The notes under the pieces are model-generated. The model was not told the origin of the DNA. It was given only the letters and a program-made list of their open reading frames with translations, and ran no database searches. A stretch of 64,000 nt of DNA from Paragordius varius (Eukaryota > Animalia > Nematomorpha), in the NCBI GenBank assembly GCA_964247055.1, contig OZ176051.1:11904001-11968000 (forward strand). The letters are read 5' to 3'. A program made the position numbers and the translations under genes. Shown in pieces: positions 683 through 62,100 of the stretch; position 1 is the stretch's first letter; the number at the start of each line of letters is the position of its first letter.

Positions 683-703
683 GCGGGACGTCTGGTCACC
701 TTA
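683..703 (-). mobile_element. Solitary hAT-Blackjack-like terminal inverted repeat end
   Basis: The minus strand reads TAAGGTGACCAGACGTCCCG, resembling the TAGGGTGACCA terminus of Blackjack-type hAT MITEs (MER81/MER94-like, from recall). No partner end was identified. Confidence 0.4.
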
Positions 704-2329: not shown

Positions 2330-4060
2330 TTTAGCGCCAAAATTCTGAAACTTTTAGACATCTCTAAAATTGGTATTTTACTAAAATTTAAATGCCGTTT
2401 GGCAATAATTTTAATTAAAGAAAACTTCCAAAAAATTTTATGCAAGTTAGTTTCAAGGAAATTTAGTTACGCGAGACTTAAGGTATTTTTAAGTATGGTT
2501 TAAGCGGAAATTACAATGCGATTTAATATAAAAAATTCATAATTTAACGATTAACTTAGATTTTAATTTATAAATGTGTTTAACTTCTTAAACCTATTTA
2601 AATAACTTTCAGAATTATGTATCGGCAAAGAGCGTTTTAATTGAAAATCTAAGGTAATGAAAATGTTCAGCGTCCTCAAATATATTTTAAATTGTGTAAT
2701 AAATCTCAAAGTGTTTATACCTTTCCACATGCGGCAAACATTAATCTCCCTTCTCTTATATAAATATTTTAAACCTATATAATTATTTCATGAAAAAAAA
2801 TTCTTGGCATCATTTGATAGTTTTGTCATAATAAAGCATTTATCTTTTACCAAAGTTAATTAGAGTAATGAATATTCGAACGCTCAAGATTAACTCCTAT
2901 CAAAACTCTTTACATATACAATTTTCCATATATAAAATTCAAGTTTATATATAAATGAACATATACCCCCAATAAGATCTAAGATCAATATAATCCAATT
3001 AGGTAGGTTAATAGTGGTCATATGCATGGTAAAGAACCGTTCAAAGCTCTATTACAATGTTTTATTAAGGTGACATTGCAAAAAAACGCACACTTCATTA
3101 AACATTGAATAAACACAAAACACATGATAAAAGTATTAATACGAGAGCATTCAAAAACAAAATTTAAAATCGTTCATAATTATAAAGTAAAATAATAGGC
3201 CTTCAATATTAATTTAAATTAATATAAAAACAGATAAAACCCAAGTTTTTAACAGTAATTTTTTTATATAGCCTAACTTTTATATGCTTTTTAAATTTGT
3301 AAAAGTCCATACATGAAGATTTGATTATTAACTTTTAGTTTAAGATTTGTGATTAATATGCTATATCATTTGTTTAATTTTGTGATGTTATTAACCATTA
3401 TATTTTAAAATGGATGTAACTTTGAGCCTGGGTTAAAAGTCTTAGTTTTAAAATCTTTTAACATAAAAACGAAATAGGTGCCATAAAACAATCCGAGATC
3501 CAATGTCTACCAAGTATAATATGTATAATGTTATTAATTCTTTTATAAAAATTATTTAGCGATAAGCTGTTATGAAAATTTGAAATCAATAAATAAATTA
3601 ATATTGATTAAAATTTCTACAACAACACTGCTCAACAAGGTTTTGTACCCCATTTTTTCATTTTTTTACATAGCCCATGTAAAGGACAAAACAAATAAAA
3701 TTGAGGCCGCTAATAGGATTTTTTAAATTCTTTTTGCAAAAACAATTATTCCTCGTATACATATACTCAAATATTTGACTGAGCAAATCGATACAAGTGG
3801 TATTCCAGCAGGTATTTTCATTATAATTTTAAAATGAAAATGGTATTATCCAAATATACCAGCCTCAGTATACGATAATTAAAAAAAATTTTAACGAAGA
3901 CTCTACAGAAAATGTTGATGATTCAAATAATAAAACTTTAACTAAAAAGTCGATCATTATATTAAAAAATATAATCTATCCAAAATCACTGCTGAAGATG
4001 TATCTCTTTTTCAGGAGAAATACAAATTGAGCGGGCTTGTTATTCCACATAGAAATAGAT
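2330..4060 (+). CDS. Possible unresolved multi-exon gene divergent from COX5A
   Basis: Several short AG...GT-bounded open stretches, e.g. ...PRIHILKYLTEQIDTSGIPA| near 3750-3810, and a stop-terminated DHYIKKYNLSKITAEDVSLFQEKYKLSGLVIPHRNR* near 3950-4060. I could not build a consistent gene model and recognised no homology. Confidence 0.25.
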
Positions 4061-5214
4061 AGTATACAATAAAAAAATGTTCAATATATTAAATATATTA
4101 ATTAAAAATTCTATGTAGAAATAAAATATACCTAACTTTTAGAACATAGAATTAAAATAAATTAAAAGCTAACCAAATTATTAAAAATCAAAAATCCAAA
4201 AATCTAAAAGGGAATTGTATGGTATGATAGATCCGGGCGGCTTGCACAACCTCTGAAAAACAACACCCCCCAAGCGCTCCTATAATTATGCCAGATATGG
4301 CAAGGTACAACGAGGTGATCTAAAAGCCCATAGGATGCAGAGAATATAACGTAGTTAAGTCAGTATAATCCAGGGAAATTGACATGTAACCAATTCACAG
4401 AATAGAGTTAGACAAATTCAACCATTAAATCGGATAAGAAGATTAGATAAATACAAGTAGTCCTATTGGGGCCCATAACTATGGTAAGATATCCTCCATC
4501 TATGCAATAACCGTTTCTGCTTAACATCCATCTGAAATTCAAAATATGGCGCATCCAACAATTTTGAAAATAAATGAAAACCACCAGTGATTAATAGGGT
4601 TTTTTGTAATAAACAACCGAAGAAAAAAAACCCTATTAACTACTAAAAATAAGCCATTCTAACAAAATGAATATAGCCTCTCTGAAAGCCCAAGGTTTAA
4701 ACGACAAAATCCCTCCTTAGTATTTTTTTATACAAATTTATACGTAAAATTAGCTTTAGAAAAACACTAGAATTAAACATTTATACCCGTACTATTTTTT
4801 TCTCCCTGTTATTTAAATGACATATTTAAATTAAAAATAAAGTTTAAAACGCTTTATGAAATGATAATATTTTTATAATATAAAATCTTTTATTACAAAG
4901 TTATATATGAATTTTTGCCTATGTTTTTGAAAAATTGAAAATCCTGTAATACCTCAAAATTCTGATTGGGGGAATCAAAATTATTTTTAGATTCGGTTTT
5001 GGAACACTAAAATTAGTCGAAATTTATTTTGAGTAGTGGTGCAAAGGTTAATTTAGTCAACTAGTGTAATTATTAAAATTTATCCATTTGGGATAATTTG
5101 CAATGCTAAAATAAAATATTATCGTAATATTTTTAAAAAAATCTATTAAAATAATAATTTGGATTGCAAAAATGATAATGGATTTTTTTCGGAAAATCTA
5201 ATATCCTCGACCCC

Positions 5215-7855: not shown

Positions 7856-9000
7856 ACTAGATGGCCCTGTCACGCTTCGCTGTGACATAGTAACACCGAT
7901 TTGTAATAAATAGAGGTAATGGAGATAAAAAATAAAAAAACAAATTAAATAAAAAGAAAGTTTTTAATTATTCTTTTACAGGTTATGAATAGGCTCAAAT
8001 ATTGTTTAATCGAAATCGACCATATTTAAACAGTTACTTATTTAATTTAATATACAACTATCATTAAATTTATTTTAAATTTAACGACATGGTTAAAATT
8101 ATTTTGAAATTGGGTTCACAAAGCTGGGATCGAGGGATATAAAAAGTAAACCATTTGTAGTCACTTTAAAGAAAAGAATGATGTTATACAAAATCCCTAG
8201 AAATTTGTTGGCGTCTTAATTTTTTGAATATAAAACCACGCCCATTTTTGTATGGCGTCTCAATAACCGGTAGACCCCTATGATAGACCTATAAGGAAAA
8301 AGCGCTGAGTTAAATTCTTTTCCTTTATAGGGCAAATATTTGGAATCATCTATGTAGCCGTCTCATGGGTTATTCAAAAAAATACCTCATATATGATGGC
8401 GTATTTTTAGGGAATAAAGCCCCAAATTATAGTGGCGCAGTTTTTGGCGATCATCACCCAGGGGCAGGTATAAAAAAGCGTTGGGAGAATTTTTATCTTA
8501 CTATGGGGAATATCTGGAAGTAGCATGGATTCCATATGTTTCTATTAATCCAGAAGTTTTCCGAAATTTAGCTCCAAAGGCAATGATATGGTGGCGCAGT
8601 TTTAGGCGGGTAGTTTTCTACCCGGTTGATACAAAAAAGCGCTGATTAAAATTTTTGCCTTTGGAAAATACTTGGAATAATGATTGATTCATATACTCTC
8701 ATTAGTTTTTGGGAAGATTTGCCTCAAAACTAAAAAATCACGGTGGCGGATTTTTCAGGACGTGAAGGTCTTAATTAACGGCCAATTTCAAAAAGCCACA
8801 CTACCTAAATTTTTACCTTCCTAAGGGTAGTAATTTAAGCACCTATTGAACTCATATGGCCTGATAGTTTTACTGAAATTTAGCCCCAACGGGTATCTCC
8901 TTACCCAGCAGTTATAATAAATAAAACGCACGACTAAAATTTTTGCCTTTTAACATGGATAACCTGGAATCCATATTAAATTTTTACGGTCTCATACCTT
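7856..9000. repeat. Degenerate ~135-175 bp tandem array (about 5 units) preceded by a Helitron-like 5' motif
   Basis: The anchor AAAAAGCGC/T..AAATTTTT recurs at ~8298, 8473, 8635, 8790 and 8923, and (G/A)TGGCG(C/G)A.TTTT recurs at ~8251, 8394, 8433, 8591 and 8741. At 7856, ACTAG...GTCACGCTTCGCTGTGAC forms a small hairpin resembling Helitron/HINE 5' ends (weak). Confidence 0.65.
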
Positions 9001-12000
9001 GATCGAAAAAAAGGTTCAAAAAATTATTTTTGTGGACAAAAATGGCATTTTACGAGGGGAGCGGGTAAAAGGGCCTAAATTTAAAATGCGAGCCGACTAT
9101 GTTAAATGCATTCGAAAATATGTAAGAAATAATTATATTTAAAATCAAGTGGCCCAACAGGTTTTTTGGAAAATTGTCTCAAAACGAATTTTGTTTTAAA
9201 AAAACGTTTTTATACGGGGTGGGCCTGAACTGGGGGCCTAATTCCAAAAAAGGCGAAGCTATTGTCGGGGCTTTCATAAATGATTATATTTTTTCGATAT
9301 TTGGATTTGAATGGGTCTACCGGTTTTCCGGAAACAGATCAGAAAGCCAGTTTCCATATATATATATATATGAATTTAGATATCATGAGATAACAAAAAT
9401 TGGTAAGCCGCCCAACTAACAGTTAAATGTCTTGATAACCAGTCAAAGCCAAATCTAATCCAAACAGACTTTAAATCCTACTATATTATAAAATTTCACC
9501 ATAAACGTGTTTTAGAGTCCAAGTTTAGTTATATATTAATCAAAGTAAGCTGAAAATATCAAAACGTCAATCAAATATGGCCGCATATTATTTATTTTAT
9601 CTGTGATTTTTATAATTTTCTTGGGTTAGTTTCTATATTTTGAAATTAACTATTACTTTACATAAAAAATAGCCACAGCTGGCTGGCACTTTGATAAAAT
9701 AAAAGTTACTTTTATAATTACATACTATATAGTTAATTTCTGACCGTAAATTAAAAAAAATCTCATCTATATATTTCATGTGTCACAGTTGGAAATTTAT
9801 TTATCTCATATAGAAACTAAAATACCCTTAAACCCCTTTTGTCTTATTATATTTGAGATATACGTTTTATAATATCATAATTACACTAATGATAAATGAC
9901 TATTTAAACATTATATAAAACGGACTTACTTTTTTTTCAGATAATTTATGCACTGCTAAAATATCTAAGTATTATAAAATAAATTATGTATTAACTAGCT
10001 GGCGACAGTGCAACAATAAATTTCTAAAAGAGAAGGTCTTGTATTTTAGGATGTATTATTAGACGAATTTTTGGACAGTTTTTTGGTCTATTTATTATAG
10101 ATTTTATAACTATTTATATTTTTTGGATGTTTATTACAAATAAAATGTTTCAAACAAGAAGGTAATTATATATTAAATAATCTTTTGAGGATATTTGATT
10201 TTTCGGTTTTAAATAAGGCTATTGTGTTTTACTATAATTAAATTGAGATCATAGTCTTAAAGACACTGATATATGTCAAAAATCTATTTTATGTATGTTT
10301 AAATACTCTGTTAATGGAGAGATCCTTAAATTCCGCCAAATGCCAAGATATATACTTTAATATAATCTAAGATTTTTTGGAATGTTAAGAATAAAATTGT
10401 TTTAAATAATATTCAAAAATATAGCTGAAATCCAAGCTGATGAAAAATAAATATCATATGAAATACAAATCGACTATTGTTTATTATATAATCACGCAAT
10501 TAAATTTCAGAAAACTCTATCAGATGCAAAATTTGAATATGTCTGTCTATAAAGAGGGAAAATTTTTAATAAAAAATAATGATGGTAGAAAAAATAAAAC
10601 TTTTTTAAAAATTAAATATATGGCAAATATAAAAATAAAAGCGAATCTTTATTTTTATTATATAGCAGACGATCCCAAAGTAAAAGGCTTTACGGACCGC
10701 AATTTCGACTAAAAAAATCCGGATGGACGCATTTTAAAAGATATAAATACGTACTAAAGATAGTACTATGAATTTAGTATATATAATTTATGGGTTAAAA
10801 AAATAACTCAACCAATTAAACAAATGGTGATATCTAAGGAGTTAATTTCTGGTTAAATTAAGACATAAACACTTAAAAAATATTTTTATAAAATGGAAAT
10901 AGTTTTTAAGGTTAAAATTATATTTAAATAAAAATAAATGATAGAAGATGCATTTTTTATCAAAAGCTCATATATATAAAGCGGTAATTGCTGAAACCGT
11001 TAAACGTTGATTGGTGTCAATAAGTTAGATGCATTAAAGTTTTTCTAGAAGAAGGGAATTTGAAGGCGCACATATTTGTGTTTGTTTTATAATTTTTTAA
11101 CTGCTTATAACGAATGTAAAATTCCCATATTATGTGAGAAAAAAGTTGATAATAAAAAACATGTTCTTAGTTTGACAAGAAATCAGAGAACAGTATTCGC
11201 CACTTTTATTTTTGCATGGTTTAATAAATAAAATCAGTTCCAAAGTGTGATGCCTATAGGCTCTGAGATTTAGTCCCTTTTAAGTTTCTGGTAACTCTAC
11301 AACTGCAAACTAAAAATTTATTGTTAAAGTATGAAAAGCAGGCTACCGTGGTTATTGTATCAAATAATTAGAAAACATTGGTATATTGTGTTGCTTTTTA
11401 CATTTTTATGTATTTTAATAAATTATTTATGAAGGCCCATATATATTTCAAATGCGGCCCGCCATTTTATTTAAATTAACGATGTGGCTCGCGACAAATG
11501 TTTGTAATTAAATATAAATTTGGGCACTACTAGCAAAAATTGAATAATTTTAATACAATACACTCAAAAACTAATTGATATTATATCATTTGATGTGTGT
11601 TGGCGATTTTTCTAAAAGACGAAACTACAGCCCTTTTCCTCACAGCTGTTGAAACAACCAAAATTGGCCAAAAATATTCATTTATTTTTTATACATTGTT
11701 TAACCTCTCTCTATATATATATTTAATATAATTTTTATAATTATAGATAAAGGTACCATACAATATATTTTTATTTCGTGTCCTGGAACATAATCATTCA
11801 CATTCCATCAATAAATACTAAATTATTTAAAATTAAAATAACCCTTTGACAAAAATCTTGAATCGGAAGTTAAGTGAAAAATCTTGACACGAAAATTAAA
11901 ATGATGTCACACAAATCGAATTTGGATTTATGGATTACTTTAATTACCCTTAAATTATTTTAAATTTTAATTTATATTATGAATATATACTGTACTCTTT

Positions 12001-44100: not shown

Positions 44101-47100
44101 CAAAGTGTAGCGATCGAGTATGCAATTATTTTATTAATTACTCTAAAATTTTTAAAATTAATTAATATTATTTAACAAAACATAATAGATTATAAATTTG
44201 TTTTTGCTTTTAATGGTTTCGCGATTTTTTGATTCCCCATAAGCATAATTTCTATTAGATGAATTTTATACGTTTTTAACTTGCTGTTTAGTTTACTTTT
44301 TTTATTTTATTCTCGCACGGATCTTACACATTTTACTAAATTTCATATATTTTAAGACTAAACGTTTTAATTGGATGCTTAATAATTATTGCAACGCTTT
44401 AATTGGATGCTTAATAATTATAGCAAAACAATTTTATTTTACTTTTTATATGACAGCTGGAGATTTCGATGTCAATTCAATAAGAATTGTCGAGGTGAGA
44501 ATGTTTATAATTTGGTGTGCGCGTTCCCAAACAATCCGCAAAAATGGTATCCCTTCTCTATAACAAAAACAATTACATCTAATCAAGCTAACACCAACAA
44601 ATCTATTGCAATAAATTACACCTCATTGAGGGCACTTTGTACGCACGAAAAAAATTCCAATAAAATGCTGGTAAGAAATTCATATTAGCAGTATCGATAT
44701 AAACGATATGTTATTTTATAAATATTTTTTAAAATTGATAATAGGTGATGTTTTTTAAATTATTAATACTAGTTACATTTTCCAGTAAACTATAAAATCA
44801 AAACGAAGGCAAAAACGTTCGCATGTTTTGATTTATCTTGGTTAAACAAATATACCGGCTTAATTTTATTTGTATATATTAGATTATTAATATTTTTGAT
44901 TTGTATTTAATTCAATTTAGATCCGCACTAAAAAATTTCTTTTAAAACATGGAGTGTTGGAGTTTAAAACATAAAGGATATCTCACAATAAACTATGAAA
45001 GAAATATTAATTACATAGAAAATATTTTAATAACTAATAAGATATTATAAATATAATTTTAAAAAGATCTTCATTACATAATTATATTTAATTTATACCT
45101 ATCTGATAAAATATTGGTGTCTTATTTAAAATTATCTATTAAAATAGTTAGGTGTAAGAAAATAGTAATAACATTTAACCACCTCCAAGAGGTTATACGA
45201 TCAAAAAACCAAACCCTTATTCCTTTATCAGGGAGGGTTGTACGCTTTTAAAAATAAAAATGGATTTCATTCAATATATTCCAAAATTGGTAGAATAGAA
45301 ATCCAAAAATTATTAAAGCAGCCCAGAAGATATTTGTGCTAAACACCTGAGAGATAAATAAATATAAAACACCATTTGAGACATAACCATTTTTATACTT
45401 TGGGTTTGAAACAATCATACAAAGTAATATATAAGATTTTAACAATTAACTAGGTTCTTATTACATTCATAAAAAATCTCATAGTACAGCATCCGAAAAT
45501 GGGATATTTTTTTACGTATTTATAATTAAGTTGATTTTGCCTTAAGAGAAACGAGAGGAATTATTTGCAAAACGATTTTGATATTTAATAAGAATAACAT
45601 TTAAAAGAATTTGCGCTTTGTCTTTTATCTTATTCTATAAACGAATTTAATTAATCCTATCAATGTTTCCGTAAATTTCAATCATTATTTATTCCAATGA
45701 TTGGTTTATTACAAAACAATCTCTCTATTAAATGTCCTTTTTTCCAAGATTATACAAACTCTGTAGTAATTGTAGAAAAATATTTGGAATTTAAACTTAT
45801 AAAATCTGTATGATAATGTTTGTGATGCTTTTAAAAATTATCAAATTCTAATAGATATTTCGAATATATATAATTTTGACTAATATCTTGTGCGATTCTA
45901 TATTTTATAAAATATCATTACATTAGAATTTCGAAATAAAATCTAATATAATTATACCAAAAAATTGGTTTTTTATAGCCAAAATGAAAAATTGTTTAAT
46001 ACCTCTTAAATGCATAATACGAAGAAACGAATTTATATTAATATTCTTCCCTATATTTAAATAAGATATGTGGGCTAGAATTCCTTATTACTCATTTTCA
46101 ACATGTTTTTTTACATTCCTGTTTGCCCATTGAATTTAGACACACATGGTTCTTCAATAGATTCTTATTTTTATCTTCCACAAGTTGTATTCAATTAAAG
46201 TGCGTATTTAAATGGTTTCCAAAATGTTTTAAAACATTTGCATGCCAAATTTTCAATAAATTTAGCAGATGATATATAACTTTTTTCATTTTATTCAAAT
46301 TCTCTTTACGGGAATTTAAGTACATTTTATAACTTAATTCATACTAATATTTTTAAGTAGTACAGATGTTGTTAAGTCGAAAAGATTGCATATTTATATT
46401 TTTGTGTTTTGTTCTAAAACAATTGGGTCAAACTACGTGTAGAAAACAAATTATTCCCCAAATAATATATCTTGACATATCGTTAATTAAAGATCCAATA
46501 GGAGTCAATTATTAAATTTGATATATAATTATAGACAAAACAAACTCGGATAATTAAAATTAAGAAATTGATAAATAATTCACAAATAATTTTTCAATTT
46601 ATCGCTTCTCTGGCTTATTAGCTATGATCGATTGTGTAGTATCTGTTCTTATCAGCTTAATATCTGATATGGTTTCTCATTGAAACCCCTGATATTAAAT
46701 CATTTTTTGTAGGTTTTGGGGATTGCTCTAGGCTTGCCTATCACTCCTCAAACGGGTCAACCTGGTATTGCACTATATCCAGGAGTGGCCCAACAATTTT
46801 ATAAACAAAATAATTACTTATGTAATAAAAATTATCATAAAGAAAAATATTGTAAAAATAATACAATGATGCATTCGGGTTTTTGACCTCTCATCAACAT
46901 GAGATGCTTGATTGTATTGGTGACAATTAATTTCTTGAGGTGCGTAGGGTAAGGGAACTTGTTTCTGTCAAAAAAGACGGTCGTTTTCGCGTACCAAGAA
47001 CAAAGGCTCTCTACAACAATTGGCATAACTTGTACACATAAGATTTTAAAATTTGATCGGAGATTATCTTTTATCAGGTCCACTAGGAGGTTGTTGAGGG

Positions 47101-50100
47101 AATGGTTTAGAATTGGAATGTGTGCTTGGATTTCTTTGGCTGCCACAACGATAGCCCAATTGTTTAGATGTTTGAGACCAATTTTCTTTGGTAGGAGATT
47201 GAGCCGCACTCGGTAGAGGTGACTCAACTTATCATCAGCAACGCACTCCACCCGACCCTGCAAAGCAAAATAATGTAGCTTAGTGGGTTCAAAACAACAG
47301 CTGAGTGATTGTCTTGGAGATAGAACTCAGAAATTTTTTTCTGAAAAGAATCATTAAAAGACCAAGAAATTTTAGATTCAGACGCCATTAACCCTCTTGT
47401 CCAAATGTTTTGGCATTTATTAGCTAGATGGAGACACAACGGTTCTCATAACCAGACAAATATTTGTCTGACTGATCGGGAGTTATAAAATCTAATTTAA
47501 CCTTACAAATGCTAGCCGACTTAAGTTCCTCGAGAGCAGAAACTCTTAAAAGCGAAATCGATACAAAATATATTGATATCATCTCAAAATAGGGCGTCCC
47601 TAAGGGGCCCGTATCACGATGCGAGCGAAATTCAGAATCTGCTCAAAAACTTTAGTCATTTTTGATCAAGAAATTCTCGTGTTACCATTTTGAATCATTA
47701 TTTCTCAATTGGGAAATAGTGGGATAGAAGAGGGTTTTTATTGCTTCAAGCTTTTGCCACGGAAGGAGGTTAGAGCTATGGATTTTATCGGGAATTTTTC
47801 TAGAAGGAACGGGTTTGTGAGGTTGACACCGGGCTTACCTAAAAACTTAAAAAAACAATAATTATGAAGAAATGTTTGGATTGTTGTTTGTTTCATTTCG
47901 TCCACTCATAAAGAAGTGAAACATATCGCATGACGCTTTAATGACGTCCGATATGATCAGCTTCCTCTCGAAGATTACGCCATTGTTGCAGCAGGAGCCC
48001 AGAGATCCAACGACGATCGGGATGACCTCGACATCATTAAGGCGCTCTCGCAGTCCAGTGGCGAAGGATTCGTACCTGATAAGCTTGTTTGTTGCGGCCT
48101 GATGGAGTGAGGATAGCCGAATTTTATATGGTACCGTGGGATCGATGATGAAGCAGGATGATTCATCGTGACGATTCTTGATTCTCGCTGATGACTTGGA
48201 AGTTTGGTGGTAGCGCCTCCTTGATCCGATTTATTAGATTGTGTCTCTTGGCTATTAGATTGCTCTCTTTTAAACAGTTATTGAGAACATGGGCGGGGGC
48301 TTCGTTATCTTTGCCACATCGTCGACATTTCAGTGTTGGGTCGTGTTTACGAGAATTGGTGGGGAGAAGATTGAGCCTGGCGCGATGAATGAATTTTCAA
48401 TCAAATAATCTCATGTGTTTTGCTGTAAAAAGAAAAGAATAGCTGGCCCGATCGGCAGCTACACATTCCATAACTCGCCTTGCAGGACTAAGTGATGGAG
48501 TTCTGCATCTTTTAGCGCACGCTGAGTGCGTCTGAGCATCGAGACTACGTTGTTCGATACGGAGTCGTTTTTTATCAACTATTAATGTGGGAGAGGAATT
48601 GATAAATTCCCATTTGATCTTAAGGAACTGAGATGATTTCCGTGCCTCTGTCCAAGGGTGTTGAGCTTTGTTGCTCGGGTTTCTAACGTCCGGATTATTA
48701 TTGCCGGAAAGAGAGGAAGCCATATCCTCCGGAGTTGGGTTTGTAACATTTAATCTATAGGCTGTTGTTTTTGAGAGCACGGCGAGCGACTCTGTTTTAA
48801 TTGATTCGTCGCGGGAGGTTAGCAGTTTGAAAGCGGAATCTATTCTAAATATATGCATGTCATCCTTTAGGAGAAGCATGCCGAGAGCACCTTTGGTGGA
48901 CACGTGGATATAGTTTATGGTGGCGTCTTTTGGAAGAACCAATATTTGTTTGATTATTGTAGTCAATTGTTTATCTATTGCATCCGAGGTATTGCAATTG
49001 ATTTGATTAAAGCGCAATCTGTGTGTGAGTGTGGGATAATAGAATGTTTTTATAGGGTCAAGCTTTTACCAGGCGGCCAGCTTGTAATTTAATATTTTTT
49101 GCGGGATTTTAGTATTTGCGGCTGGTCTTTGAATGTCCAACCCAACCGGGTTACCTAAGAAGTTTGTATATTCGTGGTGTTGTAAGGTTTTAATAATGCC
49201 ATCATCAATTGAGAACTGGTAAGTTGCATTAAGAGAAAAGGTGACACACTTGGAAGAATTTATTGTAAGACCGATTTCACCAAGGAGGAATGTGAGTCGG
49301 TCAAGCGCCGCTTGGTGGAGATGTGGGTTTGGCGATAAGCAAGCCATATCATCCGCATACGCAAGTATTTCGTGACTGTGATTACTTATTTTCTCAATTA
49401 TTGAATTAACGGCAACGTTAATTAAGGTGTTGAGTGGGCAGCCCTGTTTGATGCCGGAGAGGAAGGGGATTTGGTTTGTCAGTCCATGGGATGTCATGAA
49501 AGCTGTGGATAGGATGAGTTTGTATAGATAATTTAAATGATATTAATGAAGCTCTTGGATAGGCCGAAAAGGGTGAGGCCATTGAAGATGGCTTGGTGTG
49601 GAAGGCTATCGAAGGCAGCATCAATATCGATCCATGTTATGAACAATGAGGATTTACTGTGCACCGCTGTTTTGATTTTTTTCGATCACCTAGTTGTGTT
49701 CGAAGCGCCCATCATAGGGGAGGAAACCCTTCTGTTTTGGAGACATGAGATTATTGTTATTGGTGTACTGGATGATTTGATCTGATAAAATGGCTGTAAA
49801 AAGTTTATATTGTATTTGTTAACGAGATTGGACGCCACCCATTAATTTTACTCAAATTTCTTTTTGGGACCAAGATCGAGATGGAAGATTTCCAAGCATC
49901 AGGTATGCGTTGGTGATTGAGACAAATATTGTAAATAGCTGAGAGTAGTTTACCATTATTGTCTATTTTTAACCATTTTTGATAAGTGACGCCGTCATTG
50001 CCGGGGGAAGACTTTGGCATTTTTTTAAGCTTGTCGACTATTGTTTTTGGCAAGATTAGCTCCATGTCTAAAACATTGTCGTGGGATGTGATTGCAGGTA

Positions 50101-53100
50101 CCGAATTTAGCGTATAAGAACGTCCGATCAAGGATTTAAAATGAGATTCAATCACCTGGGGATCGATTTTACAGGACTTGGGCGGGCCTTCCATGATAAG
50201 ACGCATCGCCTTTCGTCTATTAAAACGGTATAGCTTTTGTAGGTAACGTGGGTTAGGATTTTCAATTGAGAATTTCTTGGGATTTTAGAAGAACGAGGAG
50301 AACTATGGTACCGGATGATATCATCCAATATTTCCTCGAATCTGGCCCAGGGATCCGGGTGAGAACTGATATTATTTAATTCGTTGATAAAATCGGGTGG
50401 TTTGTTATTATTATCAGGTATTAAATAGTTTGACCGGCCTTCCAAAGGCGGAGTAATAGAGTGTGGTACGTCTGGTTCAACTTCGCAAATATTCGAAGTG
50501 GATGGAGCATCATCCTCGATTGGATATTCTAATATTGAAAACCTATTATTGCAGGTGACTGTATCGCTAGCGTTAAAAGTTTGATGGGCAAACTTGTGAC
50601 AGTGACTTTTAACTGGGGATTTCTGTCGGACAGGTTTGTTATCAGGGTTAAATTTAGTATCAAGAAGCGAAGTCGCTTTCTCATGATGGCGTATTGGAGC
50701 ATTATGTGAACGAATGTGATGATCCAGATTACTTTTTTTGGGATATGTTTCGCCGCAAATGTTGCATTTGTGCGGGAATAGAGTTTTGGGGATCTCGTGC
50801 CGCGATTGTAACTTTGAATGTCCATTAAAAAATTGTAGTCACATATGGCCATGAAGTGAATGGCTAAACCCAATTCCTCCCGAGGCACCTCACCTTAAAC
50901 TACAAATTTAGGACTGAAGTCCGGAATTATAAACCTGGCGATTTGGATGTGGGACGCTATCCTTCATAACACTTATAATCGTGCCACTGGCACGAGCTCC
51001 CTAAAACTCTATTCCCCCACAAATGCAACGTTTGCGGCGAAACATATCCCAAAAAAAGTAATCTGGATCATCATAATCGTTCACATAATGCTCCAAAACT
51101 CCATCATGAGAAAGCGACCTCGCTTCTTGACACCAAATTCAATCCTGATAACAAACCCGTCCAACAGAAATTCTTAGTTAAAAGTCACTGTCGACAGTTT
51201 CCCCAACAAACTTTTAACGCTAGCAATACAATCACCTGCAATAATAAGTTTTCAATATTACAATATTCAGTCGAGAATGATCCTCATCTTCAAATATTTG
51301 CGAAGTTGAACCAGACTCATTACACTCTATTACCCCTCCTTTGGAAGGCCGGTCAAACTATTTGATACCTGATAATTACAAACCACCCGTTTTTATCAAC
51401 GAATTAAATAATATCAGTTCTCACCCGGATCCCTGGGCCAGATTCGAGGAAATATTGGATGATATCATCCGTTACCACAGTTCTACTCGTTCTTCTCAAA
51501 ACGATCCCAATAAATTCTCAACTGAAAATGCAAACCCACGTTACCTACAAAACCTATACCGTTTCAATAGACGAAAGGCGATGCGTCTTATCATGGAAGG
51601 CCCGCCCAAGTCCTGTAAAATCGATCCCCAGGTGATTGAATCTCATTTTAAATCCTTGATCGGACGTTCTTATACGCTAAATTCGGTACCTGCAATCACA
51701 TCCCACGACAATGTTTTAGACATGGAGCTAATCTTGCCAAAAACAATAGTCGACAAGCTTAAAAAAATGCCAAAGTCTTCCCCCGGCAATGACGGCGTCA
51801 CTTATCAAAAATGGTTAAAAATAGACAATAATGGTAAACTACTCTCAGCTATTTACAATATTTGTCTCAATCACCAACTCATACCTGATGCTCCATCTCG
51901 ATCTTGGTTCCCAAAAAGAACCAAGATTTGAGTAAAATTAATGGGTGGCTTACAATCTCTTTAACAAATACAGTATATAAACCTCTTACAGCCATTTTAT
52001 CAGATCGAATCATCCACCAATAACAATAATCTCATGTCTCCCAAACAGAAGGGTTTCCTCCCCTATGATGGGTGCTTCGAACACAACTACGTGATCGAAA
52101 AAAATCAAAACAGCGGTGCACAGTAAATCCTCATTGTTCATAGCATGGATCGATATTGATGCTGCCTTCGATAGCCTTCCACACCAAGCCATCACAATGG
52201 TTTCACCCTTTTGGGCCTATCCGAAAGCTTCATTAATATCATTTAAAATATCTATACAAACTCATCCACAGCTTTCATGACATCCCATGGACTGACAAAC
52301 CAAATCCCGTTCCTCTCCGGCATCAAACAGGGCTGCCCCTTTTCTGGCACCTTATTTAACGGTTAATTCAATAATTGAGAAAATGAGTAATCACAGTCAC
52401 AAAATACTTGCGTATGCGGATGATATGGCTTGCTTATCGCCAAACCCACATCTCCACCAAGCAGCGCTTGACCGACTCACATCCCTCCTTAGTGAAATCG
52501 GTCTAACCATAAATATCTCCAAGTGTATCACCCTTTGCCTTAATGCCAATTACCAGTTCTCGATTGATGATGGCATTATTAGAACTTTTTAACACCACCA
52601 ATATACAAACTTCTTGGGTAACCCAGTTGGGTTGGACATTGGACCTGCTCAAAATCCTGAAATCCCGCAAAAATATTAAATCCCAAGCTGGCCCCCTGGC
52701 AAAAGCTTGACGCTATAAAAACATTCTATTATCCCAGACTCTTGCACAGACTGCGCTTTAATCAAATCAATTACAATACTTCGGATGCAATAGATAAACA
52801 ATTGACTACAGACAAATATTGGCTCTTCCAGGAGATAACCACAAACTATATCTACGGGTCCAAGCTCAAAGGTGCTTCTGCATGCCTCTCCTAAAGGATC
52901 ACATGCATATATTTAGAATAGATTCAGCTTTCAAACTGCTAACCTCCCGCGACGAATTAATTAAAATAGAGTCGCTCGCCGAGCTCTCAAAAACAACAGC
53001 CTATAGATTAAAAGTTAAAAACCGAACTCCGGAGGATATGGCTTCCTATCTTTCCGGCAATGATAACCCAGACGTTACAAACCCTAGCAATAAAGCTCAA

Positions 53101-56100
53101 AACCCTTGGACAGACACGTAAATCATCTCAGTTCCTCAAGATCAAATGGGAATTATCGATTCCTCTCCCACCTAATAGTTGATAACGACTCGGTATCGAA
53201 CAACGTTCTTCCGTAGTCTCGATGCTCAGACGCACTCGACGTGCGCTAAAAGATGCAGAACTCCATCACTTGGCCCTGCAAGAAGGAGTAATGGAATGTG
53301 TAGGTACCGATCGGGCCAGTCATTCTTTTCTTTTTACAGGAGAACACATGTTCCGTGATTGGAAATTCATTCATCGCGCCAGTCTCAATCTTCTCCCCAC
53401 CAATTCTCGGTAACACGACCCAACACTAAAATGTCGACGATGTTGCAGAGACAACGAAACCTCGCCCACGTTCTAAATAACTGCTTGAAAGAGAGCAATC
53501 TAATAACCAAGAGAGACAACCTAATAGTAAATCGGATCAAGGAGGCGCTACCACCAAACTTCCAAATCATCAGCGAGAATCAAGAAGTTGACTCATCCCG
53601 TCTCCGCCCGGACCTAATCGTCACTGATGGATGATCCTGCTTCATTATCGATCCCACGGTACCACATAAAAATCGGCTATCCTCACCCCATCAGGCCGCA
53701 ACCAACAAACTTATCAAGTACGAATCAATCGCCACTAGACTGCAAGAGCGCTTCAATGGTGTCGAAGTCATCCCGATCGTCGTTGGATCTCTGGGCTCCT
53801 GGCACTGCAACAATGACGTAATCTTCGACAGGATTCCTATCAAGATTCCAAACCTCTGAAAGAAATTGATCATATCAGACGTCATCAAAGCATAATGCCA
53901 TATGTTTCACTTTATTATGTATGAAATGAAACAAACAACAATCCAAACATTTCTTCTTAATTAATGTTTTTTTATTTTTATATTACGCAAATTGCATCAT
54001 TGTTCCCATACAATTTTATCCATATTCACTCTTTAATTGTTAGATAGGCCACTTACATTTTTGTATCTTATTTCAGATTCTTAATTTATAATAAAAATAT
54101 AATAACTTTCAAATAAATTCTCTGTTCTTATCAGCTTAATATCTGATATGGTTTCTCATTAAACCCGTGATATTAAATCATTTTTTGTAGGTTTTGGGGA
54201 TCGCTCTAGGCTTTAGGCTTGCCTATCATTCCTCAAACGGGTCAACCTGGTATTGCTCTATATCCAGGAGTGGCCCAACAATTTTTATAAATAAAATAAT
54301 TAAAAAAAAATCTTTTTAAATATTTCTAACAAAAATTATCGTCAGCTAACTGTTTAAAACAATTTACTACAGCATTAAAATTCATTTTATTCAAGTACAT
54401 TAGTTTACCGTGAACGCCTAGAAAAGAAAAATGTAAAAATAATACAATGATGCATTCGGGTTTTTGACATCTCAATATTGTATTGGTGACAATTGATTTC
54501 TTGAGGTGCGTAGGCTAATGGAACTTGTTTTTTCAAAACGGTCGCTTTTCGCGTACCAAGAACCAGGGCTCCCTACAACAATTAGCATAATTTATACACT
54601 TAAGATTTTCAAATTTAATGGGAGATTATCTTTTATCAGGTCCACTATGTCGTTGTGTCTTTTGTTTAATATATTATCATCTTTGATGTAATGGTTTAGA
54701 ATGTGGGCTTGGAATTCTTCGGACTTGCCACAACCACGGCATGTTTGATCATATGTGAGACGTATTTCGTTGGTAGGAGATTGAGCGGCGCTCGGTGGAT
54801 GAAATTCCAGTCTCTAATACGGAGACTTTATTATTGTAAAATATATGACTGACCTTATTATCAGCAAAGCACTCCATCACCCGACCCAAAGCAAAATGAT
54901 GCAGCTCAGTTTAATTTTCGTTTATAAATCGGAGGTTAAAAACAACAAAACGATTGTCTTCGGAGATTTTAGCGAACTAAAAAATTGTAGGCTGAAAAGA
55001 TTCATTAAAAGACCAATAAATTTTAGATCCAGACGCCATTTTCGCTATTGTCCGAATGTTTTGGCTTTTATTATCTGGATCTGACACAACTGTTCTTATA
55101 ACCGGACAAATATTAGCTTAACAGATAGGGAATTATAGAATCAAAACGAACCTAAAACGAAAGCTAGCCGACTTAAGTTCCCCGAGATTAGAAACTTTTA
55201 TAAAAGGATCCATGCTAGTAGTAACCTAAAGGCGAAATCGACACGAAATATATACTGTCTTGAAATAGGGTCATCCCTAAAGCGTTATTACTACGAGACC
55301 CAAAAATATAATTGTTAGTCTTATCCCATATTCTCCTGTTACATGTTTAAATTATTTCTCAATTGGTGAGAAATAGTGGGATAAAAAAGGTTTTTATTGC
55401 GTCTTTCCATGGAAGGATTTTAGCTATGAATTTTATCCACGATTTCCGTAGAAGAAACGGGATTTATGAGGATACTTAAGAGCCTGGAAACTTTATACAC
55501 TCACATGGAACAGCAACTTCGCCAATTTTAAATATAAAACTGGTGCGATAGAAATTTTATTGTACTTTTCTGCTTTGATCGAAAGACCAATATCATAGAC
55601 ATTTTAAGCCCTTGATGACGTTCAGAAGAAGGCAATAAAACAATGTCATCAGCATAAGCGAGGACATTGTGACCATTAAACACCATAGATATCAACACAG
55701 AATCGATAGACATGTCAAAAAGAAGGCCAGAAATTGGACACCCCTGTTTAATGCTAGACAAGAAAGGAATGGGTTGCGTTAACCCAGAGGCGGAAAAGAA
55801 CTGAGTGCATGAATTTGTGTAAATATCCTTAATTAAAGCTTTACCAAAATTAGAAAGACATTCGAAAATCAGCTGGTGAGGGACCGAGTCAAACGCAGCC
55901 GTGATATAAATAAAAGTTACAAAAATATCTTTTTTATTACGTTTAGCATCAGAAATTGATTTATTTAAAAAATAATTATGCTTAAAGCAGCCATCAAAAG
56001 GCATAAATCCTTTCTGAGCTGATGATAATAAGTTATTCTTTTTAATATGCTTAGAAATACGGTTGGCAATAAGGCCAGTAAATAATTTTTAAATCGTATT

Positions 56101-59100
56101 GCTTAGAGAAAGAGGCCTTTAACTTGAAACAAGAGATAGTCTCCTTTTTTTTAGAATGTAAACTTGACTTAGTTATCCAATGATTAGGAATCATTCTATG
56201 ACTTAAACACAAATTAAAAATTTTAGCTAAAAGAATACCTTTGGGATCCACCTGCTTCCATTTGGTATATGAAATACCATCAGGACCAGGGGAGCTGTTA
56301 GAAACTTTTCTTAGTTTATCAGAAACTTCAGATGCTGAAAAGGGAATAAAATCAAGTAAAGGGACAGAATTATTAGAATAATTAAAATTAATAGGCTCCG
56401 ATTTTTTGCCAATTGTATTGTTAAAATAATTAGTTATATCTTCGTTATTAATTTTACAAGAGGATGGAGGGCCATCAACGATTTATAGCCTTTTTCCTAT
56501 TTTTTCTATACATGCTACGAATATTTATATCTTTTTGAACCAAACTTTTAGACTTATTATAATCAGCCCGGGGAGGAGATAATGCATTTTGAATAGATCT
56601 TTTTAAAAAACAAACGTCCTCCCAGTCTGAATTCTCTTAGTAAAAGGAAAAGTATTTTTATATAAAGCACAGTATTTATTAAAACTTTTATTTGGTTGAG
56701 GTGGAGTAACCGATGAAGTGGGTTCCTCATCAACACCCTCCTCAAGAATAGTAAAACGATTAGATAAAGAGACCTCATTTTTAGAAAAGTAATTAAAATA
56801 ATTTTTGTTTACCGAACTACTTGAATTTAGAATATTATAATTTTTATCCATACTGGAATTATTGCCTTCATGCCCCTTACCAATGATGTTTGAGGTCCCA
56901 CTCACTTTGGTAGGAGAAGAATTAACTGGAGAGCTTGGTGGATCAACAAAGTTTACTGAATGGGTTGGAGATGACTCGACAACCTTAGGCTTGTTAAACG
57001 GATTAAATCCGAGGTTAGACAAACTTGAGTGTTTGGTATGAGGATAAGGAGATGGATTATGAGACCTTTTATGAGCTAGTAATTGGTAAGTGATACGAAG
57101 GCAATAATTCCAATGCAGATATCAATTTAAGTATTCTAATCCCAGTGATAGTTCGGTAAACAAAAATTATTTTAATTGCTTTTCCAATAATGAGGTCCCT
57201 TTATCTAATCGTTTTAGTATTCTTGGGGAGAGAGTTGATAAGGAACCCTATTTATCGTCTACTTTATCCCACCAAATAAAAATGTTAAATAATATTTTTC
57301 TCTAAATAAAATACTTTTTACTTTTAATAACCTTCTCGATTCCCACGAAGATAATTCAGACTGGGAGGATATTTGTTCTTTAATGCTATATCAAGCATTG
57401 TCTCCTCCCCAGGCTGATTATAATAAGTATAAAAGTTTGGTTCATAAAGATATAAATATTCGTAGCATGTATAAGAAAAATAGGAAAAAAGCTATAAGAT
57501 TAATCGTAGATGGCCCTCCATCCTCTTGTAAAATATATAATGAAGATATAATTAATTATTTTAACAATACAATTGGCTTAAAATCGTATTAATTTTAATT
57601 ATTTTAATAATTCTGTTCCTTTACTTGATTTTATACCTTTTTCATCATCTGAAGTTTCTGATAAACTAAAAAAAAGTTTCTAACAGTTCCCCTGGTCAGA
57701 TGGTATTTCATACCAAATGGAAGCAGGTGGATCCCAAAGGTATCCTTTTAACTAAAATTTTTAATATGTGTTTAAGTCATAGAATCATTCCTAATCATTG
57801 GAAGATAACTATGTCATTTTAATTTCTAAAAAAAGGGAGACTCTTCTCTTGTTTCAAGTTGGAGGGCCCTTTCTCTAAGCAATACTATTTATAAATTATT
57901 TACTGGCCTTATTGCCCAACTGTATTTCTAAGCATATTTTAAAGAATAACTTATTATCATCAGCCTAGTTATGCCTTTTGATGGCTGCTTTGAAAACAGA
58001 TATTTTTGTAATTTTTATACGGCTGCGTTTGACTCGGCCCGTCACCAACTAAATTTTAGATATCACCCTAATTTTGGTATAAATTATGGCATTCAAGCTT
58101 TAATTAAGGATATTTACACAGATTCGAATACTCTGTTCATTTCCACCTCTGAGTTAACGCAACCCATTCCTTTCTTGTCTGGCATTCAACAGGGATGTCC
58201 AATTTCTGGCCTTCTTTTTAACTTTTCTATCGATTCTATGTTGAGATCTATGGTGTTTAATGATCAAAATGTTCTCGCTTATGCTGATGACATTATTTAA
58301 TTGTCTAACTCTAAGCGTCATCAAGTTGGGTTTAACCTGTTGGAATGTCTAATTAATGATATTGGTCTCTCAATCAAAGCAGAAAAATGCAATAATATTT
58401 CTATTACTGCTTGTGGATTATTTAAGATTGGCCAATTCGTTATCCCTTTAATTGTTTAAGGTGAGTTTGTTAAGTTACTTGGTAAGCTCATCAACTACAT
58501 AAATCCCGTTCCTTCTATGGTAATCGCTAGCTCTAACCTTCTTCCGTGGCAATTGACGCAAAAACCTTTTTCTATTAAATTACTAGTAGCTTGGATCCTT
58601 CTATAAGAGTTTCTGCTCTCGAGAAACTTAAGGTGTCGGCTTTTTCAGGTTCTATCTCCAAGACAATCGCTCATCTGTTGTTTCTCACCCTCGAATTTAT
58701 AAACGAAAGTTAAAGGATACTGAGCTACATCATTATGTTTTTCAGGGTCGGGTGATGCACAGCGTTGCTGATGATAAGGTCAGTCATCACTTACTATACA
58801 ATAAGGACCTTTGTTTTGGACACTGGAATTTCACCCACCGAGCGCGGCTCAATCTCCTACCAACGAAAATGCGTCTCAGGACATCTGAACAATTGTGCCG
58901 TCTTTGTGGCAGTCCAAAGAAATCCAAGCACTCATTCTAAACTATTCAATAATAATATGCCAAAAGACACAACTTCATAATAGACCTGAAAGATTATTTC
59001 CCTTCAAATTTTAAAATCTTAAGTGAGAGAGAGACTATGCCTTGACTTCATTGTAAAAATTGCAGATTGCTTTGATTTCACACTACTTTTAAAAACATGC

Positions 59101-62100
59101 TAAAAACGTTCGAAACCGCTTATAACAAATAACTAATAAAATATAGCTCAATGTTTCATCAATTACAAGAGACCTACAGCAAAACTCAAGTTATCCCAAA
59201 TGTTGTAGGGAGCCTCGGTTCGTGCTACGCAAAAAAACGACATTGTTTTTGACAAAATCGATTCTCGTTACTTTGCGCAAATCAATTGTCATCAATAAAT
59301 TTAAATCATATTGCGACATGTACCATATGTTTATGAGCAGTCGAAATTCCCTCATAGACAACAAGCCGTGACCTACTGCATAATTGTGATATTTTTTTAT
59401 ATATTTTCTTTTTTCATTTATTATATATATAATATTATTATGTTCCCTTCTTGTCCCATGTACTTCGCGCCCAACATTGTTGCCTAGAACATTTCTTCGT
59501 ACATTCTAAAATATATTTTTTAGTATATCTGGTTTATACTATTTTAGACCAAGACTGTTATATTGTCTGGAAGACTTCTTTTGTCGCTCCTTAAAAGTAC
59601 AATAGAGAACAAACCTTTTAAGTCAGGAGTGTCTATTCGGCTTTTATAGAACACAAAATATAATATTTAAGAAACTAAGGTAAAAATTCTTAAAGAAATT
59701 TTTTCAATGTTGCCTTTCAAATTTGGAGCGAAAATGGTTCAAATAAATACTTTTAATGTCGTATTTTATTTTAGTATCTCCGAATTCTAATAAAATATTT
59801 ATTATATACTTTGATTCTGACCTCCGAATTTTTAATCGTAACCACCCCTGTTTACTCCAAGGTTAAACTAGTACAAACTATTAATTGTTTTCCCTTTTAC
59901 GATTTCCGAAAGAAGCTTCTTAATATAACCAGATAATGGGTAAATCATTTTGACAAAAATATGGTACATATTAACAAAACCGGTTAAATTGAATAGTTTT
60001 AATCATAATAAAACACAGGTCCTAATAAGACCCTTCTCAACTTTTTGTAAATCGTCATCGAGAGATATGTTAGATTATAGAAAAGTATAATATATATGTT
60101 ATATAAATAGTGATAATGAGAATTTAATTCAATTCGGTTTTTATTTTGTTTAAATTAATATGTATAAAAAATTTATTAAAATGAAACCAGGTACAGATGG
60201 TTAGCAATTTGGCCGTTATTAATGAAACCAACATCCCTATTCGTATTGGAATAAAACATGATTGCAAAACTGCTAATGTTGATTTTTATGAAGCTGTCAC
60301 CAACGAAATAGTTTTTATACCAATATCCTTAATTCAACTCAAAGATACGAATGTTAAGACGGTGGTGTGTCAGTTTTATTGTAAAGATGTTTTGATTGCC
60401 GAAATTCCTATCAATGATTGTCAGAGTAAACTTTATACTATATATTATGAACTAAATATAAATTACATAGTACACCCCTTATAATTTTGTTATAAAAAAT
60501 AAACATTGCATGCATAATATTATTTGCAAGTTCCTTATCGAAATTCGAAAGGACTTAATCAGAAAATATAAATTTAACATTTGTAATAACATATTCTTGC
60601 AAATTAGGAAATTTGTTATTTGTAATTTTTGAAATTTCTGGGCGGCACTTATACCTTAAAGGACCTTATTTTGGCATGCTTTGTTTTGACACCCCTCATT
60701 TATCATATGATACACAGTCTTATAATATAATTTTGTTTTTATTAATATTACGTTCCTATACATTAAGTCAAGCGTGAATGTTTTTATCGTACTAATAAGT
60801 AACCAGTTGATAAATTGATAATCATTTTCAGCCAAATATAATTTTATTCACAAATTTAATGCAAACCATCTCTCACTTTTTATAAAACGTTCCGGGAATT
60901 ATTTTATAAATATTTACATATATGTTTACATAAACAACTCTATAATATTTTGGTATTGCATAGAACATGAACTGCGTATTCCAGCCAATAATGATTTGAA
61001 AGAATCTATGAAATACTGTTATGTCTACATGGTGGGATGCGGGCACGATATAATGCAACATGAATCATGCACACTTATAAAAATTTTACCGGCTCTTAGA
61101 ATCACCTTCCCCTACCTTTCCTTACTCATTAGCGATAAGGATAAACTTTATACTTTGGAAGCTAGAATACAACAGTCTGAAAATTTGTCATCCAACAACA
61201 CTGAAGCAATTACAATAGATAACAGACATAATAATACTATTTATAAAGAAAAATCGCCTATGAAAAAGGATGAAAATCCTGGATGCTCACAATCTTCAAA
61301 TTGCAATTCTATTTACGATTTTTATTCGTTCAGTCACAATAGCTTTGCCGAAACTGTTAATGGCGACGATATCAACACCTCTTATGTGGAACTAAGTTTG
61401 AGGTTTTTAAGGGTTATATATTTTGAATTTAAATTCAAAGTTTGAAGTTTATTATTTGTAGAAGGATTTAATTATACGGCACGATACCGTGATATAGAAA
61501 CACTTATTTTCATCTATTCATCAATGAATATTCAACAGTTTATAAATTATATTATTCAATAGAGATGTCATTGCCAACAAAATCATGCTAAATTTTTGTG
61601 TACCAAACTATTTAATTCAAGATCTTTTTAATGATATAGTCAATTTTACGCGAAGAGATTACGAGGAATTCGTTAGCGCCCATATGTTGAAAGAACACAA
61701 AGAAATTGTATTAAACGAAGGGAACTTGAATTTAATTGCCGGGTATTATATAAATTATTCATGTTTTAATCGAATACCTCTAATATTTATTTTATTGGCA
61801 GTACCATAGAAAATTATCCAATATACCCTGGACTCTTGGTAGTCCTCAACAAAGATCCCACGCTCTCAAATAACGATAAAATTGGTTCAATAAATCCGAG
61901 CTCCTCATTAACCCTAAATTTAAATGTACCCTTGATTTCGTTCTCACCAACACTCTGTTTAATGGATAAATGTTTAAACATTAGTTTTAATGCCCTAATT
62001 ATTAACGATACGAATTTAATCTTTCACGTAATGTCGGCATATAGCGATGTTTTGCAAACGATACCTCCTTATAGGAGCTGTATTCTGGAGTACCCTAAAA

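Follow-up and report, generated by a model that had tools for sequence, protein, structure and literature searches.

The window analyzed here, a 64,000-nucleotide stretch of the Paragordius varius genome (contig OZ176051.1, positions 11,904,001 to 11,968,000), contains two multi-kilobase palindromes, each composed of two copies of one retrotransposon family joined 5' end to 5' end. Family A forms the pair 47840-50811(-)/50804-54120(+), and family B forms the pair 54425-57078(-)/57082-59527(+), whose arms are ~84% identical. Both pairs are too long and too alike for chance. Judged by their target site and protein domains, A and B appear to be two families of retrotransposons without long terminal repeats (non-LTR) that target the U2 small nuclear RNA (snRNA) gene, carry a restriction-like endonuclease (RLE) and are of the Utopia type within the R2 superfamily. 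The inversions probably arose at the 5' junction during integration, where the cDNA snapped back or a second priming took place, in a lineage whose insertions come with long target duplications. The head-to-head arrangement of two families had been proposed in an earlier reading of the letters alone (the sequence-only reading), and it is borne out by the inverted-repeat search and self-BLAST described below.

Anatomy of the two palindromes

The window corresponds to C2:11,904,001-11,968,000 in a 44-contig, 110.5-Mb eukaryotic assembly, and the locus lies 11.95 Mb into a 15.2-Mb contig. The sequence is AT-rich (24-31% GC) with a GC-rich block at 48-54 kb. Pairs were located by an inverted-repeat search and self-BLAST of the window. 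The element map was then built from BLAST to a full-length B copy and to A-right, the canonical arm of palindrome A, from tblastn with the B protein, and from alignments of the joints and ends (Table 1). The genome-wide census of pairs is partial, with pair counts given as lower bounds and several pairs defined by coordinates only.

By self-BLAST and the inverted-repeat search, the A arms are 88-90% identical over 47840-50801 and 50989-53980. A-right has a complete 3' untranslated region (UTR) that ends exactly at U2 nucleotide (nt) 42 (54121), while its 5' end is truncated within zinc finger 1 (~B amino acid (aa) 174), inside the run of zinc-finger codons and with no start codon. A-left, the inverted arm, has the shorter 5' end, starting at the equivalent of 50973, and is without the last 140 nt of the A 3' UTR. 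Arm homology is limited by 50811 and 50973, and the 162-nt centre between these points (50812-50972) is found only in A-right. This centre codes in the (+) direction and matches the B protein at aa 177-225/193-290 (tblastn, translation), which makes the canonical A-right the longer arm. The pair itself is thus where the sequence-only reading had placed it, whereas the spacer that it had drawn between the arms is coding sequence of A-right. An open reading frame (ORF) at 50529-50888(-) had suggested that the centre (162-187 nt) is a 5' extension of A-left, and this candidate is likewise ruled out by the (+) coding (tblastn, translation).

The A arms abut with a 9-nt overlap. The 9 nt at the joint, CGATTGTAA, read D-C-N in the zinc-finger frame of the (+) arm (translation against B aa 172-180), and their inverted counterpart TTATAATCG (50973-50981) marks the start of A-left. 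The mini-hairpin that had been noticed at the edge of homology is present as a string, but it lies inside the arms and not at the joint. Its counterparts are imperfect in A3(-), from the second A palindrome described below, and partly deleted in A-left. Breaks in the reading frame differ between the arms (tblastn pieces), in agreement with the independent frameshifts read from the letters.

The B arms match at ~84% over 55548-56884 and 57082-58404, and at 77-84% out to 54597/59025 (self-BLAST). The sequence-only reading had the arms meeting on GAAG at 57097-57100; the actual joint is at 57078/57082, with three ambiguous bases between the two 5' ends. It had also given one arm ~230 bp of extra 5' sequence, and a longer arm does exist, the excess being ~196 nt by which B-left extends beyond its partner to B position ~1499. 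At the other end, B-left stops ~110-120 nt short of the end of the element and stands tail-to-tail with the U2 3' flank. These last ~110-120 nt, together with the TCTG that follows them, are present in B-right and missing from B-left. Because each arm holds sequence that its partner lacks, B could be a simple snap-back of one arm only if sequence had been deleted later, and the pair best fits an event with two templates. A tree of 13 B copies places the two window arms together at its base, with 94/93 support for their split from the others, and the two arms share 16 derived sites.

Table 1. Positions of the palindromes, their joints, the target gene and related copies. Plain coordinates are window positions.
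Feature	Position	Strand	Evidence or remark
Intact U2 snRNA gene	46601-46798	+	Rfam RF00004, 154 bits, E 2.6e-32, model positions 1-192
Left copy of direct duplication	46642-47825	+	U2 nt 42-198, shortened U2 3' flank, B3
B3, antisense 3' piece of B	46824-47825	-	B positions ~4611 to 3168
Filler, ~14 nt, between left duplication copy and outer end of A-left	47826-47839		Flank homology ends ...GTGAGG (~47825); A homology from 47840
A-left, inverted arm	47840-50811	-	BLAST to A-right positions 40-3031, 87.7%; tblastn B aa 238-1281
9 nt at A joint, 5'-most, CGATTGTAA	50803-50811		8/9 inverted match to TTATAATCG at 50973-50981
A-right, canonical arm	50804-54120	+	tblastn B aa 193-1266; 3' end shared with another U2-abutting copy
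Mini-hairpin CGTGCCACTGGCACG (CGTGCCA-C-TGGCACG)	50980-50994	+	8 nt inside arm homology
U2 nt 42-198, 3' target half joined to A-right	54121-54283	+	Rfam U2 95 bits, 5' part replaced (without nt 1-41); BLAST 92.7%
Right copy of direct duplication	54121-55472	+	U2 nt 42-198, U2 3' flank, 3' part of B-left
U2 3' flank	54284-54424
B-left	54425-57078	-	B positions ~4620 to 1499; BLAST 1501-4176, 4378-4486; tblastn aa 259-1255
B joint, 3 ambiguous bases GTA between 5' ends	57079-57081		Local alignments of both arms to full-length B
B-right	57082-59527	+	Starts at B position 1695, complete 3' end; BLAST B 1695-3232, 3508-3578, 3786-4721
TCTG after B-right	59528-59531		U2 nt 42-45; then non-U2 DNA
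C3 pair 1	L027:8327-8657(-) with 8778-9239(+)		A positions 966/742
C3 pair 2	L027:9711 to L031:164(-) with L031:317-1191(+)		Arms 88-92% identical; A positions 2251/2112
C5 pair	C5:12734076-12735421(-) abuts 12735426-12735724(+)		1-4 bp gap; coordinates only
Near-identical open B copies	C6:8891-12736; C3:4529750-4533571; C5:12727815-12731633; C5:12783645-12787466

Identity of the elements

An RVT_1 domain is present in both A and B. The intact B copy on contig C6 consists of a single 1282-aa ORF with RVT_1 at aa 581-821 (Pfam, E 7e-38), an N-terminal C2H2 finger at ~aa 244-266, and a C-terminus in which the CCHC motif CRRCGKSKETQAHVLNHC is followed by the nuclease motif RPDLIV...IIDPTV (RPD...D). 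This is the architecture of Utopia, namely one ORF with an N-terminal zinc finger, a reverse transcriptase (RT) and a C-terminal zinc finger plus restriction-like endonuclease. The best PDB matches of the B protein are R2 retrotransposon proteins (E 1e-64). Family A is degenerate, yet it is colinear with B by tblastn.

The target of Utopia is a U2 snRNA site with TCTGTTCTTATCAG (PMC4640811). The 3' ends of A and B adjoin the same TCTGTTCTTATCAG of U2, so that the element end is followed by TCTGTTCT..., and the assignment of both families to the Utopia type follows from their insertion at U2 nt 41/42 as described for Utopia (PMC4640811). A Penelope-like element, the first guess suggested by the inverted 5' partner, is ruled out by the R2 best match and by the CCHC and restriction-like nuclease motifs, and no match to a GIY-YIG nuclease was obtained in a Pfam search of the B protein. 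Four or five B copies have open frames of 1276-1293 aa and are 98-100% identical (Table 1); judging by sequence, family B is probably still active. One other B copy, at L023:1487-1662 (C1:11510437-11510612), has an inverted 49-bp segment (B positions 2963-3011) between colinear parts.

Target gene and long direct duplications

Palindrome A is enclosed by a direct duplication of 1.2-1.35 kb whose start is exactly U2 nt 42, the position of the U2 nick. Its two copies match by BLAST at 46642-46816/54121-54302 (92%), 46839-47085/54423-54647 (84%), 47307-47551/54952-55204 and 47673-47822/55330-55471, and both contain the joint at which the U2 flank meets B tail-to-tail, an unusual arrangement. The duplication has the shape of a very long target-site duplication. 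The 'B' sequence to the left of palindrome A (46824-47825) is part of it, which the sequence-only reading had missed.

Long direct duplications that start at the nick measure 174 bp (100% identity), ~530 bp and 1.2-1.35 kb. The two shorter ones lie 24-34 kb downstream of window A, and a whole U2 gene is located upstream in each case. The 174-bp repeat belongs to a 5'-truncated A copy at L029:4449-5831 (window-equivalent 78449-79831), which has an intact U2 gene on one side and another U2 nt 40-198 on the other and represents a young insertion that left U2 whole. The ~530 bp repeat, with copies at L029:5650-6171 and L026:214-750 (window-equivalent 79650-80171 and 84214-84750) that are 88% identical, encloses a full-length B copy that is 96% identical to active copies; it starts at U2 nt 40 and ends within an antisense A fragment.

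Genome-wide, 29/34 U2 matches begin at nt 40-42 and 5/34 are full length, and the starting point of the 29 partial matches identifies them as 3' halves left by Utopia insertions. When U2 nt 11-41 were sought beside the 5' ends of B copies or between arms, they turned up in the two intact U2 genes alone, and neither U2 nt 1-41 nor a promoter was found between the arms of any pair. Because U2 nt 11-41 never occur between arms, ordinary insertions into oppositely oriented U2 genes are argued against. When ribozymes were sought at the 5' ends by scanning 40-64 kb with Rfam, U2 was the only match. Many U2 3' halves are located on C3 at 257-527 kb, in alternating orientation. The U2 gene and ~500 bp upstream of it are themselves duplicated between window 46103-46812 and L029:3957-4661 (87% identity), and both Utopia pile-ups sit downstream of these paralogous U2 units.

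A second copy of palindrome A

A second A palindrome is located 34 kb downstream at L026:571-5095 (window-equivalent 84571-89095). It contains the same joint between inverted arm and centre, with a colinear spacer, as palindrome A of the window, and the two are 83% identical over 337 bp. Its inverted arm spans the full 3' end and continues into 28 nt of U2 (nt 42-69), also inverted, while its arm A3(+) is without ~1.1 kb internally. The 5' truncation in zinc finger 1 lies at an arbitrary point and is found identically at both loci, so the A joint must have common descent. The two palindromes were also considered as independent events at a hot spot, and this was rejected because an identical 5' truncation is unlikely to occur twice.

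The four A arms are 90-93% identical to each other, and the window partners are among the least similar (90.5% versus 92-93%). The tree of this quartet is an unresolved star. Of the informative sites, one unites the partner arms, while the other two groupings have 14 and 9, and these sites are clustered. Orthology of arms between the two palindromes, as the 14:9:1 distribution of sites might suggest, was dropped on account of the clustering and the star tree. The claim is limited to the A partner arms not being sisters. Identity among the arms is mosaic, which points to gene conversion.

The shared joint, the star tree and the fact that partners are not nearest relatives together indicate that the window palindrome is secondary and not an independent local event. 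It is also not the donor, because A-left is without the last 140 nt. The sequence-only reading had proposed comparing each arm with its partner and with other copies, and here the comparison goes against it, since the A arms are nearer to other copies (92-93%) than to each other (90.5%). The cause is that the whole palindrome was copied, not that two separate insertions occurred. The insertion in the window carries marks of its own: an exact junction at U2 nt 42, a duplication with the nick as its starting point, and, at the 5' junction, 14 nt of filler. On our reading, a single A palindrome formed first, and the entire structure was copied into the U2 gene of the window soon afterwards, the copying step being inferred. 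This step may have gone through a palindromic read-through RNA, the cDNA switching to the donor DNA, or a duplication at the DNA level.

Recurrence in the genome

At least 4-5 independent head-to-head joints are present in the genomic DNA that was read, and all abutting pairs of the same family in it are head-to-head. They include two pairs on C3 and one on C5 (Table 1). In C3 pair 2, a U2 remnant follows the (+) arm, which exceeds its partner in length. Truncation points vary from pair to pair. On C3, U2 3' halves also form three pairs whose members point away from each other at distances of 3.3-4.2 kb. The recurrence of head-to-head pairs points to a process tied to integration. The sequence-only reading had seen two events side by side in the window as a sign of a recurring mechanism; the recurrence holds, but the window really contains one old B event and one secondary copy of the A palindrome. 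The two C3 pairs (L027:8327 to L031:1420) alternate as (-)(+)(-)(+), with element coordinates that rise along the (+) pieces (742-1244, then 2112-3171), and they could be one insertion with two inversions instead of two events.

Origin of the inverted arms

The pairs have in common a 5'-to-5' joint, one canonical U2 junction, a second arm whose start lies within the 3' region or at its end, and enclosure in a long direct duplication. These shared features point to an inversion during formation of the 5' junction; both this coupling to integration and the enzyme that would have made the inverted arm are inferred from the anatomy. The arms abut without target sequence between them (3 nt in B, a 9-nt overlap in A).

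In the proposed sequence of events, the first-strand nick at U2 nt 41/42 would prime cDNA synthesis, and the second-strand break would fall far downstream, 0.17 to 1.3 kb away. As a result of this distant break, a long direct duplication would bracket the insertion and a whole U2 gene would be kept upstream. In a minority of integrations, the 5' junction would be made only after a second, inverted stretch of the element has been synthesized. This could proceed by one of two routes. In the first, the 3' end of the cDNA would fold back and prime its own copying (snap-back). In the second, another free 3' end would prime on a second RNA, which amounts to double target-primed reverse transcription (TPRT) resembling twin priming. 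Either route would yield two arms with different 5' truncations that meet head-on and share 0-9 nt of microhomology. The B pair would be one old event that needed two templates, and the A pair would descend from one snap-back-compatible event whose whole palindrome was then copied as a unit into the U2 gene of the window. The ancestral A palindrome fits snap-back in its longer canonical arm, its 8/9-nt inverted microhomology and the inverted U2 nt 42-69 tail of the second palindrome. Nesting of the inverted arm within the canonical arm is seen for A and for C3 pair 2, but not for B and probably not for the C5 pair (by coordinates only). The arms are 10-16% diverged and touched by gene conversion, and errors of the RT shared between them are no longer readable.

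Several observations weigh against this account. Eleven other B copies have no inverted partner in the flanks examined, so head-to-head pairing must be a minority outcome. Private changes number 113 in B-right and 53 in B-left, with branch lengths of 0.114 and 0.056, and this doubling in B-right is awkward for a simultaneous origin of the two arms. The right flank of B-right contains only the TCTG of U2, with no duplicated flank above shuffled controls (Rfam and alignment), and the B flanks are explained fully by no model. Around palindrome A, the flank duplication is more diverged (Jukes-Cantor distance ~0.20) than the A arms (~0.08-0.10), a gap that needs either gene conversion of the arms, for which mosaic blocks are visible, or alignment noise in AT-rich sequence. 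Finally, every step of the mechanism is a reconstruction from copies that are all dead and 10-30% diverged.

The best-surviving alternative extends the second route to all pairs, and it is a possible, if tentative, explanation. In such a double TPRT, which is twin priming that uses two RNAs, one cDNA would be primed at U2 by the 3' end of the bottom strand and the other at the distant second break by the 3' end of the top strand, after which the 3' ends of both cDNAs would anneal by microhomology and be filled in. Pairs of both the A and the B type are accounted for, since either arm may be the longer, and so is the direct flank duplication, with the arms located between two copies of the stretch that separates the breaks. 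Inverted arms that start within the 3' UTR (A-left, B-left and C3 pair 2) would be explained in the manner of L1 internal priming. An element RNA with a co-transcribed U2 3' half would account for the U2 tails in inverted orientation, which measure 28 nt in the second A palindrome and ~150 nt in the C3 dimers, and a second subunit of the R2 protein is recruited to the second strand. The cost is that two RNA templates are needed, or one used twice, and that the read-through RNA is hypothetical. In addition, B-right is not followed by a right-hand copy of the target, and the ancestral A event is explained no better by double TPRT than by snap-back. A more elaborate version, which is doubtful, holds that Utopia here integrates without a nearby second-strand nick of its own and that both 3' ends prime. 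The dimer would then have been re-mobilized through a read-through transcript from the U2 promoter that crossed both arms and ended in the U2 3' half, with the RT copying a hairpin-forming RNA of ~6 kb.

The sequence-only reading had explained each palindrome as an independent snap-back in place, in which the U2-primed first-strand cDNA folds on its own 3' end and is copied to nearly full length. The geometry fits, with an inverted arm followed by a direct arm and U2 nt 42, and such 5' junctions are a documented class for R2 (PMC11371274). For A, the longer canonical arm, the 8/9-nt inverted microhomology at the joint and the end of A-left 140 nt before the 3' end all speak for it, and snap-back does suit the ancestral A event. 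For B, however, there is unique sequence in each arm, and the arm without a U2 junction reaches further 5'; by coordinates, the non-canonical arm of the C5 pair is also the longer. The joint of A is a zinc-finger truncation shared with the palindrome 34 kb away, and this, with the star tree, makes the window copy secondary. Snap-back in place for each palindrome is therefore improbable, and the mechanism first proposed, though reasonable and of the right class, errs in its details for both pairs.

A DNA rearrangement that followed integration is an equally unlikely origin, whether by fold-back repair or replication template switching at breaks that the endonuclease made time and again in this U2 cluster, or by recombination and deletion between elements in oppositely oriented U2 genes. 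The cluster is prone to rearrangement, as seen in the gene-conversion mosaicism of the A arms, the ~1.1 kb deletion in A3(+) and the 49-bp inversion in B, and it contains antisense U2 fragments; a DNA-level duplication could also have copied palindrome A as a unit. Nevertheless, no U2 nt 1-41 or promoter lies between any arms, and arm ends are either element ends or internal points that never run into arbitrary flank. Window A has the hallmarks of an insertion (U2 nt 42 junction, duplication starting at the nick, filler), and the same architecture occurs at several loci with differing truncation points. An assembly artefact from a chimeric fold-back read, although palindromes of this kind are known from long-read libraries, can be ruled out here because the arms are 84-90% identical with independent indels and stop codons, the locus is deep within its 15.2-Mb contig, and the A joint is present twice in diverged form; the artefact that the sequence-only reading had allowed for is thus not supported.

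Relation to known systems

Twin priming was reportedly described for L1 by Ostertag and Kazazian in 2001 (cited in PMC11371274). L1 twin priming resembles the pairs described here in its inverted 5' part, microhomology joint and single target duplication, but its segments come from one RNA and do not overlap. The arms here overlap by ~3.0 kb (A) and ~2.4 kb (B), and the distinction from L1 that the sequence-only reading had drawn on this basis stands. Penelope-like elements with an inverted 5'-truncated partner also show the head-to-head shape, as a regular footprint of integration. They belong to another RT clade and use a GIY-YIG nuclease, whereas A and B have a CCHC motif, a restriction-like nuclease and R2 as the best match.

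The published Utopia elements (Kojima and Jurka, 2015, PMC4640811) share with those described here the 3' junction at TCTGTTCTTATCAG, the ORF layout and variable 5' junctions that often lie outside U2. Their target duplication is absent in arthropod families and 20 bp in reptile families, and the terms 'inverted' and 'head-to-head' are absent from that paper (PMC4640811). The present elements differ in their duplications of 0.17-1.3 kb and in the fraction of copies that are head-to-head dimers.

Snap-back 5' junctions, in which upstream target is joined to an antisense insert, have been found among insertions made by R2 protein in PRINT, the precise insertion of transgenes by means of RNA (Zhang et al., 2024, PMC11371274; Palm et al., 2024, PMC11331408). 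The protein superfamily, the antisense insert on the upstream side and the minority status of the outcome are the same as here. The PRINT products are engineered insertions in human cells that were read at the junction, with multi-kilobase arms not described, whereas the copies here are natural fossils with arms of ~3 kb, and pair B cannot be a simple snap-back. In human cells, R2 variants unable to nick the second strand leave duplications of the target that are on the order of 1,000 bp (Aderounmu et al., 2026, PMC13486585). As in the present loci, these are direct duplications of hundreds to ~1,000 bp downstream from the first-strand nick. The R2 duplications stem from a mutant protein in rDNA, whereas here they are apparently the normal habit of natural elements, and the U2 gene is kept whole.

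The class of mechanism is thus already known from L1 twin priming and from laboratory work on R2. New are its natural, multi-kilobase and recurrent form in Utopia, the link with kilobase-scale target duplications, and the copying of a palindrome as a unit. Synthesis of the second strand and formation of the 5' junction are the least understood part of non-LTR retrotransposition (PMC13486585), and the present loci are natural fossils that show side by side inverted 5' junctions and ~kilobase target duplications, which have so far come from engineered R2 assays. If the proposed origin at the 5' junction is true, both outcomes would lie within the normal repertoire of an R2 relative, inverted synthesis could extend ~3 kb, and this lineage would spare an essential multicopy target gene by duplicating the cut half. 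The dimers are also a source of long palindromes and of instability near snRNA genes. For repeat annotation they are a trap, because a single insertion event reads as two insertions.

Other repeats

Two further repeats were recorded alongside the elements described above. A 527-bp inverted repeat pair at L026:6513-7039 and 7868-8379 (window-equivalent 90513-91039 and 91868-92379), with copies 94% identical and 830 bp apart, is unrelated to A and B and may represent the ends of another mobile element. A tandem array at L028:3546-10000 (C3:4537546-4542000) has a period of ~1057 bp and units that are 99.7% identical, and a 340-bp piece akin to this array is located at L027:7312-7650.

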